Source: Euprymna scolopes (lineage: Eukaryota). From it: 64,000 nt of DNA. The translations under genes and the position numbers were made by a program. The stretch's first letter is position 1. Every line of letters starts with the position of its first letter. Where the stretch lies: assembly GCA_053919585.1 (NCBI GenBank), contig CM132789.1; one strand, 5' to 3'. The notes beneath the pieces were generated by a model that saw only the letters and a list, made by a program, of their open reading frames with translations, had not been told where the DNA came from and searched no databases. Positions 57,571-58,414 of this stretch are shown here, piece after piece.

Positions 57571-58414
57571 GGCTTTGGCCGAGATCAAAGTGTAGTATCT
57601 GTTCTTCAGATACTGCACTTAAGATAATTTGTACCAGTCAATGGAGGGGAAACCCTCTATACTGGGACAATTATTATTTTTGGTAACCAGAGTGACCCCT
57701 TTTAGGGGAGCTGGTTTTTACCTCACATTAAAAACGGCCTTGTGCCTAATTTGCTCAGTGGGGGAGCAAATAAATACCATCTGTTCTTCAGATACTGCAA
57801 GCTATGACTAGCAAGGACCAGATGTGGGGGCAACCCCACATGCCTGACCTTTAACCAGCTCCCATTTCCCACCTCTCGGGAGCTGGTCCCCTTTTTCCCT
57901 TCCCCCTCCCTTCACTCCTCACATTAAAAATCGGCCTTGTGCCTAATTTGCTCGGTGGGGGAGCAAATAAATACCATCTGTTCTTCAGATGCTGCAAGCT
58001 ATGACTAGCTATGACTAGCAAAGACCAGATGTGGGGGCAACCCCACATGTCTGACCTTTAACCAGCTCCCATTTCCCACCTCTCGGGAGCTGGTCCCCTT
58101 TTTCCCTTCCCCCTCCCTTCACTCCTCACATTAAAAATCGGCCTTGTGCCTAATTTGCTCGGTGGGGGAGCAAATAAATACCATCTGTTCTTCAGATGCT
58201 GCAAGCTATGACTAGCTATGATTAGCAAATACCAGATGTGGGGGCAACCCCACATGCCTGACCATTAACCAGCTCCCATTTCCCACCTCTCGGGAGCTGG
58301 TCCCCTTTTTCCCTTCCCCCTCCCTTCACTCCTCACATTAAAAATCGGCCTTGTGCCTAATTTGCTCGGTGGGGGAGCAAATAAATACCATCTGTTCTTC
58401 AGATTCTGCACTTC
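57571..58414 (+). mobile_element. tandem array of the U2 snRNA-headed short element (locus 2)
   Basis: U2 fragment at 57574-57606. TCTGTTCTT junctions at 57598, 57780, 57977, 58184 and 58391 define units of 182, 197, 207 and 207 bp. Confidence 0.85.

Follow-up and report, generated by a model that had tools for sequence, protein, structure and literature searches.

The 64-kb stretch of DNA from the mollusc Euprymna scolopes analyzed here, hereafter the window, contains an array of four short units lodged in sequence that resembles the U2 small nuclear RNA (snRNA). This locus is probably a single dispersed copy of a U2-derived short interspersed nuclear element (SINE), termed C, into which units of two families, A and B, have inserted on four separate occasions at the equivalent of U2 nt 38/39; mobilized, on this view, by a long interspersed nuclear element (LINE), such units would form arrays that extend themselves. 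The units appear to be SINEU-like SINEs moved by a Keno-like target-specific LINE, a partnership and a mechanism that we infer. Genome-wide counts were made over the 5.9-Gb assembly, and the analysis of arrays is based on 219 units in 52 arrays, drawn from 70 genomic loci and the window.

All four units of the window array are non-coding, end in ATACCA (AATAAATACCA) and are followed directly by TCTGTTCTT (Table 1), exactly as in a sequence-only reading of this DNA, which had described a U2 5' fragment and four non-coding units with a common end and follow-on sequence. That reading, which covered 57571-58414, overlooked the 3' part of the host SINE C and a second array elsewhere in the window. 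Unit 1, of family A, differs in sequence from units 2-4, all of family B, and retains the U2-like Sm-site region. A fifth TCTGTTCTT, at 58391, begins the C body, a third kind of U2-like body, and this 3' half scores 143 of 160 as family C. The Rfam U2 model (gathering score 46 bits) aligns over its full length to the head plus unit A, including the Sm-site-like AUUUUUGG, with a score under the gathering threshold (29.5 bits, E = 0.0023), and a C body returns a weak match of 20 bits. Tandem Repeats Finder reports a period of 207 for the window array (3.4 copies, 96% matches). A tRNA scan near the array found no tRNA.

The units are not confined to this locus. The exact 20-nt unit tail GGGGGAGCAAATAAATACCA occurs 48,793 times in the genome, on all large contigs, and the same pattern read backwards, used as a control, does not occur at all. 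Most of these exact-tail copies are clustered at a spacing of ~183-218 bp and account for at least ~10 Mb of sequence; copies 98-100% identical to the B unit of the window are found on many chromosomes. Unit lengths range from 182 to 218 bp in discrete classes, namely 183/194 bp for family A, 198/208/218 bp for family B and 210 bp for a further family, E. An array may combine all three families, and their order varies, one array reading AAABEEBAAABABB; the longest arrays hold at least 14 units. Pairwise distances within and between arrays are nearly equal: 2.1 vs 2.4% for A, 2.7-2.9 vs 2.9% for B and 3.6 vs 4.0% for E. Since units of one array are as diverged from each other as from units on other chromosomes, they represent independent draws on a genome-wide pool rather than local duplicates, and slippage is not the main cause of the arrays. 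The earlier view that the first unit is a separate variant, and that slippage cannot be the sole cause, is borne out both by the A and B assignments and by these distances. The homogenization by local duplication that characterizes satellites is not seen either: arrays are family mosaics whose internal distances equal those between arrays. Unequal exchange nevertheless reshapes some arrays as a secondary process, as deduced from a higher-order repeat of ~1,717 bp comprising eight units (217-217-217-245-208-198-218-197 bp) at locus L007. Short, non-coding, dispersed, present at high copy number and flanked by target-site duplications (TSDs), the units have several attributes of SINEs, and their independent origins, mosaic order and TSDs agree with the earlier proposal that they are non-autonomous retroelements and not products of slippage. 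Sequencing runs with a mollusc label contain the stretch, and the units and the junction between their tail and TCTGTTCCGG are also present in contigs or reads under three species labels. Contigs from other runs stop short of spanning the window array, and no empty allele appears among them.

The sequence flanking the arrays belongs to another element. Around solo B units, a unique flank is followed by a U2-like head, the B unit, TCTGTTCTT, a C body ending in AAATAGGTAC and again a unique flank; most arrays are likewise bounded by the same head and the 3' part of C, each within a different unique flank. The loop variant of the head (TTCGGG or TTTTGG) agrees with the subtype of the C body downstream of the array (Fisher p = 0.0002), indicating that both flanks are halves of one C copy and that C copies from several subfamilies have received insertions. 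The whole array-bearing C is enclosed by direct repeats of 9-19 bp, in most instances beginning with TACA, in 7 of 30 cases vs 3% in shuffled sequences, which identifies C as an ordinary dispersed retroposon. Exact matching over the whole genome counts the uninterrupted junction of head and body 13,514 times and that of tail and body 4,585 times, so that by these figures about one quarter of the C sites are filled. Divergence from the consensus is 1.4-4.6% for C bodies (subfamily consensus) and 1.4-2.2% for units; the hosts are therefore as old as the units or older, by a small difference. The head is lacking in most A, B and E units, although some E and B units carry a full one. The sequence-only reading had taken the unit itself to be headed by U2; here, as in most arrays, the head is that of the older host SINE C.

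The junctions between units reveal how the arrays were built. TCTGTTC follows 198 of the 224 unit tails, and 40 of the 52 in an unselected sample from contig 1, the remaining tails abutting a full head, a head beginning at CAAAG or an internally truncated unit. The flank predicted from the window alone was thus recovered, and mostly unrelated flanks were not seen in these samples. Two forms of the junction exist, TCTGTTC-TT and TCTGTTC-CGG, and neither is linked to the family or to any internal marker of the unit. Rare variants of the first 9-10 nt reappear at the next downstream junction in 10 of 32 cases, for an expectation of 0.85, and do so also between units of different families. These first 9-10 nt, TCTGTTC(TT/CGG), are consequently the TSD, and the unit proper begins at CAGAT. 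The possibility that the first 20 nt up to CTGCA all belong to the TSD was rejected, position 15 (A/G) not being locally inherited. A difference in age between the two junction types was likewise considered and dismissed: TT-type units are not older than CGG-type units (1.5 vs 1.7%). In the array at locus L025, runs of different rare junction variants adjoin, which implies that internal junctions, besides the one proximal to the head, have served as targets. As a copy of the target stands on both sides of each insertion, arrays grow. The idea that every copy is a landing pad for the next is therefore retained, while the proposal that the unit carries its own copy of the target is not: that copy is the TSD made at insertion, as the independence of the TT and CGG forms from internal markers indicates. 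In the same L025 array, an A unit is interrupted by a ~230-bp element termed F (1975-2205), whose TSD of 16 bp is ACCCTCTATACTGGGA. Element F bears a GGCCTTGTGCC box and a compensated hairpin stem, the same 3' plan as the units, and could represent one more SINE with target specificity that belongs with the LINE group described below.

In U2 numbering, the units insert at nt 38/39. The 3' flanks of Keno and Utopia begin at U2 nt 39, with TCTGTTCTTATCAG (PMC4640811; PMC6136364). The earlier suggestion of U2 targeting is accordingly right as to the site, that of Keno and Utopia, here in a U2-derived SINE, and wrong as to the U2 genes themselves. The 3' half of real U2, TCTGTTCTTATCAGCTTAATATCTGATA, has 1,187 matches in the genome, most of the listed places lying in a 764-bp tandem array on contig 9, and GATCAAAGTGTAGTA stands immediately upstream in 1,173 of these 1,187. 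Genome-wide, not one of these 1,187 copies has a unit tail attached to it, so that the copies sought inside full-length U2 genes are absent. The real U2 of Euprymna scolopes reads GATCAAAGTGTAG, with one A more than the usual GATCAAGTGTAG, and the first hundred repeats of its array on contig 9 of the assembly (G000; ~168.867-168.969 Mb) are interrupted by four gaps of 7.1-7.6 kb at ~168.876, 168.918, 168.928 and 168.946 Mb.

LINEs with open reading frames (ORFs) are found in the same U2-like heads. The full-length LINE K1 (7.6 kb) lies inside the array of locus L062. Its ORF1 (1,009 residues) returns a weak zinc knuckle (zf-CCHC, 18 bits for a cut-off of 20.8), and Pfam assigns to its ORF2 an N-terminal apurinic/apyrimidinic (AP) endonuclease (Exo_endo_phos), a reverse transcriptase (RVT_1) and, at the C-terminus, zf-RVT. 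All nine copies with the K1 3' untranslated region (UTR), which are 98-100% identical, continue with GATCAAAGTGTAGTA TCTGTTC, followed by an A unit in four, a B unit in two, the 5' end of K1 itself in two, forming tandem LINEs, and the 5' end of another LINE in one. The K1 ORF2 is present in at least 56 copies with 98-99% protein identity and open frames of up to 1,145 residues; most of these must have a 3' UTR other than that of K1. A LINE-like 5' end termed K2 (locus L027 from position 2717; locus L069, downstream of a K1 tail) starts, as K1 does, right after TCTGTTC, reads TGATACCTACA...GGCAGTG... and has an ATG ~400 nt in. Protein-database relatives of the K1 ORF2 are ~60% identical. On the contig of one of them (L072), the U2 flank and the box described below are absent. 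Another relative (P0004, 60% identity, from another assembly) falls in a cluster of 732 member sequences, and its contig shows ORF1, ORF2 and the next ORF1 ~1.2 kb further on, so that LINEs stand in tandem there too. A second LINE, D (loci L010/L061), possesses RVT_1 and zf-RVT domains, sits in a U2-like head and is followed by TCAAAGTGTAGTA. A third, K3, is represented in the window by a fragment (Table 1) flanked by a degraded AAAGCTGTAGGA; genome-wide, ~8 of 27 matches to the K3 end are followed by (C)AAAGTGTAGTA.

The 3' ends of these LINEs resemble those of the units. The 17-nt box GGCCTTGTGCCTAATTT of the units is found at 17/17 positions in K1 (z = 6.5-7 against shuffled sequences) and at 15/17 in D. 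The best match found to the unit tail is the K3 end, its last 60 nt, with 23 of 24 nt from the box onward and a further 11 of 11 nt, GCAAATAAATA and CC, on either side of a longer intervening loop (both manual counts). Units, K1, D and K3 share the same two-hairpin fold, GGC-CUUGU-GCC and then a stem AUUUG.../...CAAAU in which AAUAAA is embedded. The C-terminus of K1 carries zf-RVT only, which is not what is expected of a Utopia element, and the 71 loci yielded no LINE with a restriction-like endonuclease. For the Utopia- or Keno-like partner foreseen by the sequence-only reading, the candidate is therefore a group of LINEs that have a 3' module in common with the units and an AP endonuclease, as expected of Keno rather than Utopia; none of those found ends exactly as the units do. 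The sequences make the K group the likely partner of the units.

A mechanism consistent with these data can be proposed. Target-primed reverse transcription of the unit RNA would start from a nick immediately upstream of TCTGTTC, which would provide the primer. The insertion would duplicate 9-10 nt (TCTGTTC with TT or CGG) and so flank the new unit with a target at either end; an array of n units would then offer n+1 landing sites and could grow by further independent insertions. The enzymes would most likely come from K1, D and K3, with their AP endonuclease, reverse transcriptase and C-terminal zinc finger; these LINEs share the U2-like heads and the two-hairpin 3' module with the units. Recognition may extend beyond the TSD into CAGAT-N-CTGCA.

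Several observations weigh against this account. In arrays with both junction forms, CGG lies 5' of TT in 81 ordered pairs vs 5 (permutation p < 5e-5), and almost all of the arrays examined join the C body by a TT junction, although at least one, L026, does so by a CGG-like one. A pure TSD model keeps runs of one form contiguous and therefore needs one extra event per array that brings CGG in at the head side; one might speculate that CGG enters through a head-bearing RNA whose complementary DNA pairs with the head of the target. The LINEs do not join the heads at the unit site: the junction lies at nt 24/25 for K1, 27/28 for D and ~28/29 for K3, and not at 38/39. The sites of LINEs and units match only if the terminal 11-15 U2-like nt (15 in K1) are counted as part of the LINE. 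At the 5' side, the junction with the head falls at nt 24, 27, 33 or 38 in 5'-truncated K1 copies and at nt 45 in full-length ones, so that the direct repeats measure 0-22 bp. Most simply, K1 would nick the bottom strand at 24/25, and the top strand would break at varying positions; alternatively, the 11-15 U2-like bases are the 3' end of the LINE, and the nick falls at 38/39 for all elements. None of the LINEs found has the exact unit end GAGCAAATAAATACCA. Nucleotides 25-47 are identical between real U2 and the SINE heads, and a nick specificity limited to this segment cannot explain why real U2 is free of units; discrimination has to come from sequence outside it, or insertions have to be removed from the gene array. 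The motif CAGAT-N-CTGCA, located just past the TSD, is common to C and all units and absent from real U2, which makes it a candidate basis for the sparing of the genes. The age gradient along arrays is weak and not significant (mean rho 0.15, p = 0.1-0.2) and gives no order for the insertions. Lastly, poly(A) RNA-seq contains no defined unit-length RNA; reads fall on both strands of the units without defined starts or ends, which looks like passive transcription.

These points have to be set against other ways of producing the same arrays. The regular period of 207 with 96% matches would suit a satellite-like tandem repeat grown from one founder by slippage or unequal crossing-over, a process that the ~1.7-kb higher-order repeat at L007 documents locally. 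As the main cause it is very improbable, because a unit differs from its neighbour as much as from units on other chromosomes and three families with several length classes follow each other in no order, the window array itself comprising one A, one 197-bp B and two 207-bp B units. Alternatively, the whole array could have been laid down in a single retrotransposition event, template jumps of the reverse transcriptase making a concatemer as in the U6-L1 chimeras. Junctions of the kind this predicts do occur, the tail joining a full head in 7 of 224 cases and an internally truncated unit in ~10 of 224. Yet neighbouring junctions share rare 10-mers in the manner of a TSD, and different variants form runs in one array; the TT and CGG junctions are ordered and not mixed; and a site-specific nick in C would still be required. 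A single event of this kind is consequently a distinctly unlikely origin.

The identity of the enzymes leaves somewhat more room for an alternative, in which a restriction-like endonuclease LINE of the Utopia type, or another, unseen LINE nicking exactly at 38/39, mobilizes the units in place of K1, D or K3. Such a partner should end in ...GCAAATAAATACCA and be followed by TCTGTTC. That 38/39 is the canonical Utopia/Keno site, that the K1, D and K3 junctions lie 10-14 nt upstream of the unit junction and that the exact unit tail was met in none of the LINEs found all speak for it; it remains unlikely in view of the failure to find a restriction-like endonuclease LINE among the loci, of the box and two-hairpin module that units have in common with K1, D and K3, and of the young, numerous and open-framed copies of the K group. 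Arrays might instead pass from one C copy to another, without new reverse transcription, by gene conversion or ectopic recombination that uses the head and C body as homology arms; this would account for the unfilled real U2 genes, which lack the C body. The process would also have to operate with a left arm of only ~35 nt at thousands of filled loci on all chromosomes, while composition differs in every array, solo B units 99-100% identical to each other sit in different C subfamilies, and blocks of units with common private mutations rarely seem to recur in arrays at different loci, an impression gained from the distance comparison. This route is extremely improbable. Separate LINE-driven insertions into a host SINE C thus stay the preferred explanation of the window locus.

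If the insertions are indeed of this kind, a broader and more doubtful reading may be considered, in which the U2-derived SINE heads and the 5' ends of the units act as a decoy that absorbs U2-site-specific retroelements, so that the ~1,200 real U2 genes stay free of units. The decoy would be self-renewing, because every insertion makes one more target. Were it true, the retroposed derivative of an essential gene would have become a new niche for the parasites of that gene, and the arrays would be records of their successive insertions.

The second array of the window belongs to the same superfamily. Two of its units carry a full U2-like head that directly abuts the preceding tail, some are 5'-truncated, and one is internally truncated. 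The type H element at its end (9402-9545) reads TCTGTTCTTACTACATGCTG.... Rfam reports U2 above the gathering score at two places in it, 8797-8961 (49.4 bits) and 9401-9536 (50.7 bits). With two such hits in the window alone, arrays of this type could be mis-annotated as U2 genes or as satellite. Downstream of the first array, (ACAT)n and (AT)n microsatellites occupy 58826-59041, and the sub-threshold Rfam matches to mir-297/mir-1277 that arise from the (AT)n are composition artefacts.

Table 1. Positions of the SINE, unit and LINE features in the window.
Feature	Start	End	Strand	Length (bp)	Description
5' half (L) of host SINE C	57570	57597	+		U2-like nt ~8-38, ends GATCAAAGTGTAGTA; from sequence and Rfam U2 alignment
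Unit 1, family A	57598	57779	+	182	Opens with the 9-nt TSD TCTGTTCTT, ends AATAAATACCA
Unit 2, family B	57780	57976	+	197	Single GCTATGACTA copy
Unit 3, family B	57977	58183	+	207	Two GCTATGACTA copies; same length class at other loci
Unit 4, family B	58184	58390	+	207	Two GCTATGACTA copies
3' half of host SINE C	58391	58549	+	159	TCTGTTCTT and C body, ends AAATAGGTAC
Second array, same superfamily	8517	9545	+		E and B units, then a U2-derived type H element (9402-9545)
LINE K3 fragment	24404	24990	-		5'-truncated 3' UTR related to K1 and D; ends with box, stem and GCAAATAAATATTCC

SINEs derived from snRNAs have until now been described from crocodilians only, and for LINEs specific to the U2 site the scarcity of target copies is regarded as limiting. 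The genome of this mollusc appears to have lifted that limit, offering tens of thousands of U2-derived targets and gaining one more with each insertion; the outcome shows in the long arrays, in no less than ~10 Mb of sequence and in a LINE group with dozens of open-framed copies. What is new is that the target is the U2-derived sequence of the superfamily itself and is multiplied by the insertions, and that this happens on the scale of ~50,000 units, with arrays that reach at least 14 of them and with the real gene family spared. If confirmed, this would be a natural case of a target-specific retroelement telling a gene from its retroposed copies, with arrays from which successive insertions could be read off. 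Promoters of snRNAs lie outside the gene, and the units would, if confirmed, also offer a test of how the RNAs of SINEs without an internal promoter arise. A full-text literature search, made without comparison with Repbase or Dfam, returned no snRNA-derived SINE from a mollusc or any other invertebrate.

The closest known elements are the SINEU of crocodilians. SINEU-3 derives from U2 by internal deletion, and the LINEs that move it are presumed to be target-specific members of the Tx1 clade related to Keno. Its copies frequently stand in tandem with a TSD between them, an arrangement interpreted as sequential insertion (PMC4494074). SINEU elements target a Mariner DNA transposon, are known only from crocodilians and number a few thousand copies at most (Kojima 2015, PMC4494074). 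By description, SINEU-3 and the units are alike in being non-autonomous, U2-derived and tandem with an intervening TSD. In contrast to SINEU, the units target the U2-derived 5' region of their own superfamily, form arrays of up to at least 14 units, reach ~50,000 copies and reside in a mollusc; as host phylum and target differ, the two groups likely arose independently. Keno, a member of the Tx1 clade with an AP endonuclease, inserts at the same point of U2 as the units, 37-38 nt into U2, with a 3' flank opening with TCTGTTCTT. K1 resembles Keno in its AP endonuclease, reverse transcriptase and C-terminal zinc finger, and all its examined copies lie in U2-like sequence. Unlike Keno, K1, D and K3 are seen in the heads of U2-derived SINEs, and their own junctions fall at nt 24-29 unless the 11-15 U2-like nt are counted as the end of the LINE; the likeness is one of domains and, on that condition, of site.

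Utopia belongs to the NeSL group and has a restriction-like endonuclease, and Utopia-1_NVit is partly tandem in U2 genes (Kojima and Jurka 2015, PMC4640811). The YURE elements insert into U2_sat, a U2-derived satellite of Ciona, and reptile Utopia elements have 20-bp TSDs (PMC4640811). The units share the U2 site with Utopia and, with the YURE elements and U2_sat, the use of a U2-derived repeat as target; they differ from both in that the tandem elements are short and non-coding and that the targets are dispersed SINE copies, not a satellite. Finally, as in R1, R2 and other target-specific non-LTR elements whose 3' junctions involve read-through or guidance by homology, the 3' junctions are precise in a multicopy target that resembles an RNA gene and the 5' junctions of 5'-truncated copies are variable; unlike R1 and R2, which occupy functional rRNA genes, the units described here spare the functional genes and hit a retroposed derivative of them.
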